From the NCBI GenBank assembly GCA_047495785.1, contig JBLDXI010000056.1, forward strand, positions 248,001 to 312,000: a stretch of DNA of 64,000 nucleotides, written 5' to 3'. Position 1 is the stretch's first letter. Each line of letters opens with the position of its first letter. This stretch comes from Lepidodermella squamata (taxonomy: Eukaryota > Animalia > Gastrotricha). A program made the translations under genes and the position numbers. The notes below the pieces were generated by a model, which was not told where the DNA came from, made no database searches, and saw nothing but the letters and a program-made list of their open reading frames with translations. Below, piece after piece: positions 1,071 through 44,475 of the stretch.

Positions 1071-4000
1071 CCACATGCGGTCCACTTGGTTCACGCACTG
1101 GCTGTTCCAACCACGGTGCTTGTTCTGTTACTGGCTGTACTTGCGATGCTGGATGGACTGGTTTCGACTGCTCTACAAGTGGGAACAGCACCCGTAGCTT
1201 CAAAATTTTTAAAAATTCGTAAAATTCCTGTTTCAGGTCAGTGCCCAAGTAACTTTTGCCAAAACGGCGGCACGTGTAATGGCGTTAACACTTGCCAATG
1301 CCCCTGGGGCTGGCTAGGTGCTGACTGCTCAACAGGTAAGAACCTGTCTCATCTCAGCATATACCGCAGTTGACTTGTTATTTTAATAGCATTCTGCAGC
1401 AATGATTGCTCTTTTCGTGGTACCTGTACGGCTCCTAACACTTGCACGTGCTACCCTGGATGGTCGGGCGCTGGCTATGGCTGCACATCACGTAATATAT
1501 CTTAGTATTTTCTCTGAATCCAATTTGGAAAACTTCAATTTCAAAATGCTAAAAGCAACCTGTACGGGCAATTGCAACGGACACGGTAACTGTGTATCGG
1601 CAGAGACATGCAGTTGCTGGAGTGGTTGGACTGGGCCGTTCTGTGAATACCGTAAGCTATCGCAAATCCCCACTATCATGACGCTGATATTGAGCTTTAA
1701 AAACAGCTATTTGCCAGTATGGCTGCTTAAATGGCGGTACGTGCTCGTCGCCTAACACGTGCTCATGCCCGAGTGGATATGTGCCAACTTATTCGGGAGC
1801 GAGTCCTGGATGCGAATTCGGTACCTAAATCCATCCATACTAAGAACCCAACTATAAATTCGATTTGGTAGGTTCATGCTGGTGTGCGAACGGCGGGACT
1901 TGCACAGCTCCGAACAATTGCACGTGTGCGCCTGGTTATGATGCTGGCGACAACTGCAACACACGTAAGACGAAGGCAAAATGAAATTATGACATTGATA
2001 TCGAAATCTTGCAGAGGTCACGTACACATGTACGAACAATTGCAACAAACACGGGAAATGCATAGCTCAGAATACGTGTGCATGTAACGAAGGCTGGACT
2101 GGCGCTCAATGTCAAACTCGTGAGTTGCATCTTAGTGCCGAATTTATTCGAATTTTGTCCCATCTGCGCGTTTCACAGGGTGGCCAAATAGAGCCGCAGG
2201 TGTGAAGTTCATAGAGCGCGCGTCAATTTAATGAGAACTTGTAGGAAATTGCAGAATAGGTAAATAATTCTTTCAAAGGTCTTCAATTTATTGTTTCTTG
2301 GCTCTAAATTGATGCGTACACCAATGAATAGAATTCACCCCGGCTTCCCCTGCGGCTTTTTGTAGCCACCCTGAAGTGTGGACTAAACTAAAATTCTTGT
2401 TTCCAGAATCTTACCAGAAGGTTGCGCCACTATTTGTAGTTTACCAAATTTTTTAATAAATTCAATTTAACCTAACGAGGAAGTATTCCATCTTTTATGC
2501 GCAATTCAACGGAAGAAATAGGAGATTTACCGTAAAAAAAATCCGGAAAGCCTCGATGATAACTAGTTCGGTTAGTTTTGGTAATTTAAATTTTTCCAGG
2601 TTGGAACATATTTTTCCTTCTCAAGTGAAATGCTCGATTACTATTCTCGTGATTCCTGAAATGAAAAATTAGTTTATATGATGATAACCTCGCAAGTAAT
2701 TAACAAACCTGTGAAAAGTAAGATTTCAGAGCGATTATACAGTTAAATCTGTTATCTCGAAAGGCTGAATATTTTCCATGCTTTGCAGCTGTGTGCTTGA
2801 ATGGTTGTAAGAATGGCGGCAATTGCACTTATGCGCATACCTGCACATGTCCTGGTGGTTATCTGTACCCGAGCGCACTCACATTGACGGGTGGTTGCAG
2901 CACATGTAACCATAATTTCGCCCCGATTTGAGTTTCTAGGAAGAATCTTGTTTTAACAGTCTACTGCCCTCAGGGATGCAACCCGAATTTCGGATCCTGT
3001 ACGTCCGCGAATACTTGCACATGCATGTCAGGCTATAGCGGCACGAGTTGCTCAGGACGTAAGTTTAGTGAAGCCACGCCTATGAGATTTTCACTCTAGC
3101 CTATTGAAGGAGACTGCAACCCCCCGTGCCTCAATGGCGGCACATGCACGTCTCTACCCAGCACATGCGCATGCCTAAGCGGCTGGTCAGGCAGCCAATG
3201 TCAGACAGGTTTGTCAGCGTTTCGCATGTTGGGAAAATAATGTTGATTCATTTCTTACAGCCACTTGTGCGAATCAATGCCGAAACGGAGGTAACTGCAC
3301 CGGGCCGAACACATGCACCTGTGCTGCTGGATACACGGGAACTTCAACCGCGAGTGGAGATGGCTGTACAACTCGTAAGCATAATTTTAAATTCCAGAGA
3401 CTGTCGGTAACTTCTTACTTGGCAATGCTTGATGTCCCTTCTGAATTAATTACACTAATATTCCGAAAATGATATTCGATTTCCCTCAGCTATCTGCTCG
3501 CCAACATGTAACAGCCCTGGAAACTGTGTTTCCCCTAACATCTGCCGTTGTCCTAATAACACGAGTGGGCCTAATTGCGACAAAGCTTGCCTAATGGCTA
3601 GCGACTGCCAAAATGGTGGAACTTGTAACTTGGCTACTGGCGTTTGCACATGCCCACCCGATTTCGGAGGAGCAAATTGCCAGACAAGTATAGCTTATAC
3701 GACTTTTTTCGTAAATCATTTCCAACTTAATAACTTGAGGACTTTGCCCTGTAAACTTTTGTCAAAATGGCGGCACTTGCAACGGAACCAATGTATGCGC
3801 TTGCACATCGAGTTACTCTGGTGCCGATTGCACTACTCGTAAGGAGCATTTTTCCAACCAGGAGATTGAATAACCTAATTTCTATCCACCTAAAGCTGTT
3901 TGCAACCCGACTTGCGATAAAGGAACATGCAGTCAGCCAAACGTTTGTACGTGTAACAGCGGCTGGGAGGGCTCAAGATGCAGCACTCGTAAGAGCCAAT

Positions 4001-41659: not shown

Positions 41660-44475
41660 TCATAGTAAAACAGTTAATGCCTTAGTGACAACGATTGGAT
41701 CAGAAAGCAAGTTGTCTATGGTAAATTCCACATTGTGTTCCCCAGCAGATTCTGCTTTTATCTCTACTGTACCATTCTTGCGTACTAAATCCAGTGTGAC
41801 ATTGCCTACCTTGTTTCCTCCGATTCTGGCTTCCACAACCGGGGCAGCATAAGCAGCCGACTCACTGTAGTTGAATTTCGCAATAGCAGTCTCGCCTACT
41901 TTAACCGATGGCATGTCCTGGATCCGAAAATTATTTAACCTCGACTGCGAATGGATATCAATCGCGGCAGAAATTGCGCCATTTGATGAGCTTGTAGAGG
42001 CTGTGTATCGTCCGCCAGTTTCTAACATACTGTCAGCGTAATCTGTTGAGACAGCTGCGAAGCAACCCATCATTTCCATAGAAAATACCACAGAGCCAGT
42101 GGCTAACAATTTCATTTTTTTCAGAATAGCAGGCTCTGGTAGCTCGTGAATTCTATCAGCCTCTATTGCCGAGTCGAACCAATTTTGACCATCGATTGAG
42201 TGGGAAATATTAAAAAATTTGGAATTCCCCTTTCGGTTCGAAATTTTAACGGCGCTTAGCCAGATGTTTTGTGGAAACGCAATTTGAAGCCACTCGGATG
42301 ACGTGAGAGCAATCTGGTCAGCTGAATGGTATTTGACACCAGTACTCGCTGACATCTCCTCGGCTACTGACATCAAATCGTTAGGGCAGATGTCTGATCT
42401 GATTGAATACAAATCAGTCTTTCCGGAACTCTCTCTTAACCCAGACCAGTCTTCTGATGCGCTGAAATGACACGCAGATCCTGTGTAAATCACGTTCTTG
42501 CAGCCGAGCGTCAGGCATTTTTTAAGGCAAATATCGGCACTTAATTGGTTTGGGGACCTACAAACAACAGAGTTCGGCCAACCGTCAGAGGTCCAGGCGA
42601 TAGCTGAGCCATTCCACCAGGCGTAATAATTGCCCCTATCCAAAGAAGCTGGCCGTTTAAGAATAGTAGGGCGGCCAGAAAGTTCAAGAAAATCGGCTGA
42701 TGTTGAGAGACGGCGGTATCCGAAGCCGAAAGAACTGCCTGGTCCAGCTAATTTGGCAGCAAATTGCAGCTCATTATCAGAGACAGGGCTGAGAGGCAAC
42801 GCGTTTTCAAACTCGCAGGCTGCTCTGTGAATGTCGTAATCCGTTCCTGGTTGTAGATTAAGGGAAACGTTGAAAGCTCGATAGCAGCCACCGCCCCAAA
42901 CGCGCCACATAGGCGGGCAGAAAGCAGCTGGTTGTTCGCAGATGTTAGCCATAGGTTTCAACCAAGCACTATTAGATGGCATCGATTGGAGAAATGTACG
43001 CGTTTCATTTATATCGAGATCTGCTAGGTCACCACCTTCAGCTTTACATAGATCTCTAGCTTGCGAAGCAGTGACGGGTGAAGTCTTAAATGCAAAGCAG
43101 CGTCCGCTATAGCTCGTGTAGTTTTCCGGGCAATCCCCAGCCCAAATCTGAGCTTTTTTCGCACTTTCATGGGTCCTACTTGCCGTTCTTACGAAGTAGC
43201 GACGAGGTTTCGAGCCATAAATCGGTTTCTCGCAAATCGTAGCGGCCAAATCTGAACAGGTTGTACGATTCTGCACTCCAGTTCGACCTTTTAGTATGGT
43301 GCAGCTTTCAGATCCATTCCAAGGCCCCAGAAAATAATCGAAATTCTGATCGGTGTAACTTTTCATGGTTCTAGCAGCGTCACTCGTTGACCGTAAAACT
43401 TCCCCTCCAACCGATTTGCATGATTGAGTTGCTTTCAAAAAGGATCCAAGTGAGTTAACGCTTTTGTAACATTTGTTTGTCGCAGCGTCATAATTCCAGC
43501 CTTCCGATGGCCCGCAGTAGCTGGAGATGGCAGCTTCCCTTCTGCAAATAAAGCTCCTCGATTCGTTGCATTGTGCATTCTGAACGCGTCTGCTTGGGAA
43601 ATGGTAAACAGCGCACGAACCCGCACTTGCATTCGGCGAGATTTGGCTCACTTCTTGCCAGAACGGCGTGATCAACCCAGATTTGTCTTCCTCGGCAACC
43701 CAAGATTTTGCTTCGTCACGCAATAGGCTATAGCCCATCCAGGGTTCAACGTCTGTTGGACCGCCGGATGACACCATCACAGTTTTTAGAAAATCGAGTT
43801 CAGGTTGCGATTTTACAGTTACCCTGAAAAATCAAGAGAGAAATTGCGTACAACTCGAAACTCGTCCTGATTTAAGCATGAATTAATGGAGATTCGCGAA
43901 TTATACTCACAAATTACCACCCGCTGATGAGCAGTATGTCATGGCTCGGTCGAATGCCATCTTGTTTGCGAAGTAGTAGCGATAGCAAGCGTCGATGCCA
44001 AGACTGCTAACAGCAGATACCCTGAAAGAGAAAAATAGGAAAGAGAAAGATGAAGTTGAAAGAATAAAGACCATCCATTAGAGCATGGCGCGAACTGTCG
44101 ATCAACAGTTCTTTCCCAGCCAATGTTATCGTCTCGCATTGTTGTAACAGTAGTTACATTCTCCATTGGTTCGGAGAAATTCATTATTACCGTGGCTGGA
44201 TTGCCGATCTCAGTAACAGGCTGATTTGCCATGAAAATCGACGGACTCCCATCATTCTGAAACAAAAACACGAAATTGGCGCCAAATAATTCCAAAAAAT
44301 TAGCAAAAGGACAAGCATGGCAAACATAAGGACAGGTAGGGATTTTCAAAATTCTTTCTCTGATTGATTTCTATGCTTGGACCAAATTGAGCAGGACTAG
44401 TGATACCTTTTGTGAGCTGGCGTATCTTCCTAAAGCGACCAGACTTAAGACTAACCGGTAAAGATGCAGAGACAT
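41660..44475 (-). CDS. Secreted multi-C-type-lectin / degenerate FA58C protein (~840 aa); exons 44475-44407, 44256-44072, 44021-43911, 43823-41660
   Basis: Signal-like MSLHLYRLVLSLVALGRYASSQK; GT-AG introns keep the frame. CTL motifs (CSNGW...ACYRY...YCSSAGGNL; CPENYTSYSGRCF...CKAEGGDLA; CPPMWRVWGGGCY) and discoidin-like EWLQIAFPQNIWLSAVKI...SHSIDGQNW...MEMMGC. Confidence 0.85.

Follow-up and report, generated by a model that had tools for sequence, protein, structure and literature searches.

A conserved splice donor and a predicted HDV-like ribozyme behind two tandem genes for giant mosaic proteins in Lepidodermella squamata

Few self-cleaving ribozymes with a role in a host gene are known in animals, the usual examples being those of CPEB3 and Clec2. 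Ribozymes folded like that of the hepatitis delta virus (HDV), among them those of CPEB3, drz-Agam-1 and the R2, RTE and L1Tc elements, share a nested double pseudoknot that runs from helix P1 to the catalytic C of J4/2, and they are found at the 5' end of retroelements or within a gene, in an intron whose following exon is known. We analyzed a window of 64,000 nt from the gastrotrich Lepidodermella squamata (contig JBLDXI010000056.1, positions 248,001 to 312,000), whose assembly comprises 122 Mb in 157 contigs with 43% GC (PMC11660948); the window itself has 46% GC and is of animal type, with introns of about 50 nt. Two tandem genes on its forward strand, gene A (1071–19930) and gene B (21384–41407), encode giant mosaic proteins, and each is followed by a predicted ribozyme with the same nested pseudoknot. 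Unlike the described cases, this ribozyme stands at the 3' end of a host gene, behind an unpaired splice donor, and its Rfam score is below the gathering threshold. The Clec2 genes, which encode C-type lectins, likewise end in a self-cleaving RNA, as is predicted for A and B, but theirs is a hammerhead in the 3' untranslated region (UTR) and so of a different class, and A and B have a donor ahead of the ribozyme and a stop whose position is not conserved (PMC6765202). This conserved ending of donor and ribozyme is a more surprising feature of the genes than their domain architecture.

The block behind the last sushi exon is conserved between loci. When both strands of the 64 kb were scanned with a descriptor of the HDV fold, only two matches were obtained, at 20053 and 41549, both on the sense strand, while 20 random sequences of equal size gave none. 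The predicted ribozyme of gene A occupies 20053–20119 (+), with the cut expected just 5' of 20053 and the catalytic C at about 20109; that of gene B occupies 41549–41625 (+), with the cut just 5' of 41549 and the catalytic C at about 41614. The descriptor matched the same gene position in the homologous loci L001–L004, and L005 deviated by one C.C mismatch in P1; these loci represent three relatives on metagenome contigs, probably of another species. Across an alignment of six sequences, 99% of the cells were paired, with six compensatory pairs, compared with 22–55% in controls with slid partners. P1 has 7 bp, opens with a G.U pair and is directly followed by GG; P2, the 3-bp P3 and P1.1 (L3 UCC with the GG) were 100% paired, and four compensatory pairs lay in P2 and P3. 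The catalytic C and the conserved A of J4/2 were present as ACTAA, ACCAA or ACTGA in five of five loci, and the P4 stem was clear in four. Only 3 of 43 nt differed between the cores of A and B, all of them unpaired, whereas synonymous sites in the flanks were saturated (proportion of differences 0.74) and introns were about 50% alike. Judged by these substitution patterns, the RNA fold after A and B is demonstrably under selection, and we infer that the HDV-like RNA cleaves itself. Neither a shared element body nor a reverse-transcriptase open reading frame (ORF) was found downstream of the ribozyme. The motif TACTAAC in J4/2 was considered as a branch point and rejected, because it was not enriched in the introns of A and B (37 vs. 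35 ± 5). A repeat of about 200 nt resembling a miniature inverted-repeat transposable element (MITE) lies at 20178–20354, 59 nt past the ribozyme of gene A, and again at 60785–60986, with terminal inverted repeats; the idea that a long interspersed nuclear element had left its tail behind the ribozyme of A was abandoned, since the sequence is this MITE-like repeat.

The second conserved element is a splice donor: each of the five distinct loci closes its sushi-4 exon (19682–19930 in A, 41159–41407 in B) in phase 1, with Cys-x-G directly before the GT. With a matrix built from 96 donors of A and B, the terminal donor of gene A (GTGAGT, 19931–19936, +) scored 9.8, the 92nd percentile of true donors, and that of gene B (GTAAGT, 41408–41413, +) scored 10.5, the 97th percentile; the other three loci scored 8.0, 5.0, and 6.8, compared with a median of 6.9 in true donors and of 1.1 in GT dinucleotides within exons. 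The predicted cut follows the donor at 122–148 nt, with a T-rich stretch before it, and the spacers in between are only weakly similar in A and B and not similar at all from one lineage to the other. The read-through tails past the donor are unrelated and 2–55 residues long, and in L001 no stop precedes the predicted cut. A C-terminal transmembrane helix encoded by the T-rich spacer was rejected, as no frame is conserved. No good acceptor was detected between donor and cut in A, B, or L001, and a passable one lies within 70 nt past the ribozyme in five of five loci. Beyond the ribozyme the neighbors vary: the next paralogue follows A, a gene with a leader, a Thr-rich stretch and EGF exons follows in L005, a convergent gene in B and L001, and an unrelated gene in L002. 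The neighbor in L005 (4430–4900, about 850 nt past the ribozyme and on the same strand) begins with a leader and a Lys/Tyr/Gly-rich part before the Thr-rich stretch and EGF exons; possibly it is another family member in a tandem layout like that of A and B.

What would such an ending do? The reading that we favor, to which we give a probability of roughly 40%, is that the ribozyme lies inside a short last intron and competes with splicing, as in CPEB3, where the intronic ribozyme reduces spliced mRNA (PMC10919898). The terminal donor after the last sushi exon would open a final intron holding the ribozyme, and if a very short last exon directly behind the ribozyme served as the splice partner, the ribozyme would be removed and a stable polyadenylated mRNA would result. 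If the ribozyme cut first, the 3' end of the transcript would be lost and the transcript discarded. The ribozyme would thus act as a kinetic limiter on the output of the whole gene family, as has been proposed for CPEB3, and would also block read-through splicing into the next tandem copy. Several observations weigh against this proposal. The covariation of the ribozyme amounts essentially to one split between two lineages. The Rfam search gave no match to the ribozyme copies of the window, and in the homologous loci its scores stayed below gathering (27.4 of 50 bits for RF00094, HDV; 27 of 37 bits for RF01787, drz-Agam-1). The 3 kb that follow contained no conserved exon. The acceptors past the ribozyme are weak (16th–33rd percentile), and 43% of random 70-nt windows contain an equally good one. 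In gene A, moreover, an AATAAA stands just a few nucleotides past the candidate acceptor, and in gene B the candidate acceptor overlaps the end of the convergent gene C.

An unlikely explanation, although it survives best among the others, is that the donor goes unused, the protein ends a few residues past sushi 4 and the ribozyme sits in the 3' UTR, where it would either destabilize the message from between the stop and the poly(A) signal, in the manner of the Clec2 hammerhead, or produce a 3' end that lacks poly(A). In four of five loci an in-frame stop occurs 2–22 codons past the donor and ahead of the cut, AATAAA is present near the ribozyme and past it in A, L002/L004 and L003, and the unit ends at the ribozyme, since different genes lie downstream at different loci; the Clec2 genes offer a precedent (PMC6765202). 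But a strong donor at a fixed position is then left without a function to explain it, the stop of L001/L003 falls inside the ribozyme, past the cut, and the tails are as unconserved as intron sequence would be.

In a further reading, which we consider doubtful, the message is split and the gene supplies only its 5' half: the ribozyme would give an end without poly(A) 120–150 nt past the donor, and the donor would be joined in trans, either by spliceosomal trans-splicing or by RtcB ligation and splicing. Possible partners are another member of the family, a tail common to several genes, or a polycystin-1-like gene that would contribute its EGF stalk and channel. The order of exon, donor, short intron piece and poly(A)-independent end is that of the 5' half in the engineered StitchR system, where the end is made by a ribozyme (PMC13685140), and of the mod(mdg4) donor transcript, which has a poly(A)-less end in its last intron (PMC6237743); the likeness is one of layout only, as no partner half was found for A and B. 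The donor-to-cut distance stays within 122–148 nt despite unconserved sequence, good acceptors ahead of the cut are missing in A, B, and L001, and the donor is in phase 1, as in every EGF exon. Against this, no acceptor transcript was identified, and the literature searched held no natural case of ribozyme-assisted trans-splicing. That the genes are natural split-message 5' halves of a particular kind, whose giant lectin heads are combined in trans with a membrane or channel part, such as a polycystin-1-like body, from a transcript of its own, is a more specific idea and seems slightly more doubtful again.

It is improbable that the donor is spliced in cis to exon 2 of the tandem copy that follows, which would produce giant head-to-tail polymers at a frequency set by the ribozyme. 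From A to B such splicing would span 1,565 nt in frame, the donor of A and the EGF acceptors of B are all in phase 1, and L005 has its signal-peptide, Thr-rich and EGF gene on the same strand about 850 nt past the ribozyme; the next gene is convergent in B and L001/L003, however, and unrelated in L002/L004, and all of them still keep donor and ribozyme. Most improbable, even though most HDV-like ribozymes are retrotransposon-borne (PMC6765202), is that a retroelement truncated an ancestral polycystin-like gene and that the ribozyme, a remnant of the element's 5' end, was simply copied with the family, for the fold is kept where adjoining synonymous sites are saturated and introns are about 50% identical, no common element body lies downstream, and the sole repeat behind the copy of A is the MITE-like piece.

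The exon–intron models of A and B were curated by hand. All database searches used single exons as queries. Gene A has 49 exons on the forward strand, with a frame open over 3,879 codons; all of its 48 introns are GT-AG, they are mostly 47–64 nt long, and 37 of the 48 are in phase 1. Because its first exon present is an internal EGF exon, its 5' end and signal peptide are placed upstream of the window. In gene B, an ATG at 21384 opens a hydrophobic leader (signal-peptide exon 21384–21441, +), and 51 coding segments give 3,848 codons free of stops when an insert of 3,922 nt is excluded; one intron is GC-AG. A TAG acceptor-like site lies 10–13 nt 5' of this ATG (21371–21383) and of that of the next EGF gene in L005 (about 4420), and these sites fit spliced-leader trans-splicing. 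By self-comparison A and B are collinear copies, with 72–83% DNA identity in blocks and 74–90% protein identity, which confirms the two tandem paralogues of the original prediction. Where synonymous sites were unsaturated, the ratio of nonsynonymous to synonymous divergence (dN/dS) was 0.03–0.13, so that, by this measure, both proteins are under purifying selection. The part from EGF to CTL2 (1237–5293 vs. 22616–26788) has a dS of 0.4–0.55 and introns up to 98% identical, far below the divergence of the saturated remainder, which suggests gene conversion between A and B over this region. From the unbroken splice path and the collinear homologues, A and B each appear to encode one chain, and on these models each is one gene with many exons, belonging to a family that has expanded in an invertebrate with a compact genome. 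The earlier claim of a single chain of about 4,000 residues thus held for the open splice path, with the reservation that gene B requires the insert to be left out.

The insert interrupts the FReD2 exon of gene B at 34078–37999 (no strand assigned). Its edges, TC...AA instead of GT...AG, ruled out an ordinary intron. It contains an ORF at 34937–35587 that is OB-fold-like, with Atlas leads to POT1/RPA at 0.88–0.92, as well as a (CTG)20 run at 34321–34380 and weak subterminal inverted repeats. Gene B has no further lesion, and no obvious relaxation of selection was seen downstream of the insert; the insert would therefore be recent, an assembly artefact of amplified DNA, or bypassed by skipping of the phase 1-1 FReD2 exon, which would leave the frame intact. 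As to its nature, it is either a degenerate DNA transposon or a chimera that arose in the assembly.

The order of domains is 16 EGF repeats in A or 17 in B, eight C-type-lectin-fold (CTL) domains with Thr-rich linkers, three F5/8 type C (discoidin) domains, four fibrinogen-related domains (FReDs), one PAN-like domain and four sushi (CCP) domains. In gene A (all +) these are the EGF repeats in 17 exons, nearly all in phase 1-1 (1071–4253), the CTLs grouped 2+2+4 with the linkers between (4521–13490), the F5/8C domains with two Cys-rich EGF-like spacers (13540–15357), the FReDs (15412–18793), and the PAN-like and sushi domains (18794–19930). In gene B (all +) the EGF repeats lie at 21496–25754, the CTLs and linkers at 26014–31092, the F5/8C domains at 31143–32967, and the FReDs, PAN-like and sushi domains at 33026–41407. 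Searches of single exons against Pfam confirmed EGF, Lectin_C, F5_F8_type_C, Fibrinogen_C and Sushi, the Fibrinogen-C E-values being 1e-25 to 1e-44, while PAN_1 exceeded the Pfam cut-off only in the two homologues described below. Local profiles recovered the 16 EGF, three F5/8C and four FReD units of gene A and just 5 CTLs; the count of eight CTL-fold and four sushi units was made by eye. Lectin_C was above the Pfam cut-off in CTL5 of A, CTL5 of B and gene C, and other CTLs were recognized by their Cys/Trp pattern. The predicted module series from CTL to CCP stood in full, while the predicted leader followed by 17 EGF repeats is true of B and not of A, which has 16 and no signal peptide within the window. 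Exon shuffling across phase-1 borders, as proposed, agrees with the intron phases of A and with the EGF exons, all of which are in phase 1-1 except the split last one. Sugar binding through the CTLs fared worse, because most units have neither of the canonical calcium/sugar motifs, EPN/QPD and WND, CTL8 of A (EPT...WLD) coming nearest; 'lectin' is here the name of folds, not of an activity. No membrane helix was found in the models of A or B, and at the DNA level each describes an extracellular protein of about 3,900 residues headed by an EGF rod. Whether it counts as secreted hinges on the C-terminus, since a strong donor closes the exon of sushi 4 and the predicted ribozyme follows.

Fibrinogen-C domains are common to A and B and to the FReD lectins (ficolin, tachylectin-5, FREP), but the latter have just one FReD, placed at the C-terminus behind a stalk of collagen, Ig, or coiled-coil type, whereas in A and B the FReDs number four and are internal, with PAN and sushi behind them. 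Amphioxus and mollusc proteins (CAH1246567.1, KAI8514006.1, RUS74677.1) resemble A and B in having 3–4 tandem Fibrinogen-C domains, some with sushi, although there the sushi domains come first, the FReDs are terminal, and Pfam shows no CTL, discoidin, EGF, or PAN. Other large mosaics with some of the CTL, discoidin, EGF, sushi, and FReD modules are Uninflatable/CLEC-78, Caspr/neurexin IV, sea-star Sfp1, and Macrostomum ap1, the last two being adhesive scaffolds; compared by description, they have another order and contain CUB, HYR, LamG, transmembrane, or VWD parts absent from A and B. Polycystin-1-like receptors, such as the sea-urchin REJ family, also bear lectin-type modules on a giant ectodomain (PMC1934368), but REJ, GAIN, and the 11 membrane helices are missing from A and B, and no membrane segment lies downstream in cis.

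When the FReD4-PAN-sushi exon was compared with 1.84 billion representatives, two proteins only matched across these domains (55% and 47%). Both are encoded on metagenome contigs from ENA that have 40% GC and genes with small introns, probably from another species, and they retain the order CTL, F5/8C, FReD, PAN, sushi. Beyond these close relatives, no database protein had FReD followed by PAN and sushi, and FReD followed by sushi occurred nowhere among the remaining matches. The sushi-4 exon had no homologue in the database search, JGI metagenomes scanned by protein profile and ribozyme pattern gave no matches, and the literature searched held no described protein with this architecture. The prediction that four FReDs followed by CCPs would be unfamiliar was right for the order FReD-PAN-sushi and too broad otherwise, given that four-FReD proteins with sushi, in sushi-first order, are known in amphioxus. 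On this evidence, A and B are a new arrangement of known modules and a lineage-specific family; with the signal peptide of B, the purifying selection, and no outside homologue of the order, the predicted lineage-specific multivalent extracellular protein was upheld.

Gene C (41660–44475, –), convergent to B, has 4 exons encoding 842 aa, a likely signal peptide, an ordinary stop and no ribozyme. It contains 3–4 CTL folds, a PAN-like stretch, a weak F5/8C domain and an all-beta C-terminal part, and EGF, FReD and sushi domains were not found in it. Compared with A, it reaches at best 36% identity along 80 aa (E = 8e-6), so the 'convergent shorter relative' of the original prediction has proved, as judged by its domains, a relative at that level only. 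The C-terminal domain of about 120 aa (41663–42052, –) had no Pfam or Atlas match, and its single-sequence fold (predicted local distance difference test score 44) was too poor a model for comparison. In the interval 41503–41662, the stop of gene C lies 35 nt beyond the ribozyme of B and a possible poly(A) signal for gene C lies upstream of that ribozyme, so that the 3' UTR of gene C may run antisense across it. A similarly convergent ankyrin gene is present in L001/L003. Farther along the window, a rootletin gene (48565–56425, –) has a single 4.3-kb GC-rich coding exon (50096–54430), unlike its neighbors with introns of about 50 nt, and is best matched by rotifer and flatworm proteins (35–43%). 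A reverse-transcriptase ORF of 769 aa without a stop (61692–63998, –; Pfam RVT_1) runs past the window end and is probably a non-LTR (non-long-terminal-repeat) retrotransposon.

By analogy, the protein most likely acts multivalently, cross-linking or binding its targets in mucus or on the surface of the body. A part in a coat, mucus, or adhesive is somewhat favored on inference, microbe recognition is unlikely, and a role as soluble partner or decoy of related polycystin-1-like receptors is less likely still. As a candidate component of a surface coat, mucus, or glue, the protein would be without a described counterpart for the phylum in the literature searched. The family keeps its ribozyme at a fixed distance behind a donor, apparently across species, despite saturated synonymous divergence, and in a culturable animal the host role of genomic ribozymes is thereby directly testable. 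If the donor works in trans, the genes would represent a natural ribozyme-assisted assembly of giant receptors, a counterpart of the engineered ribozyme-activated trans-ligation, and the receptors would be built combinatorially.

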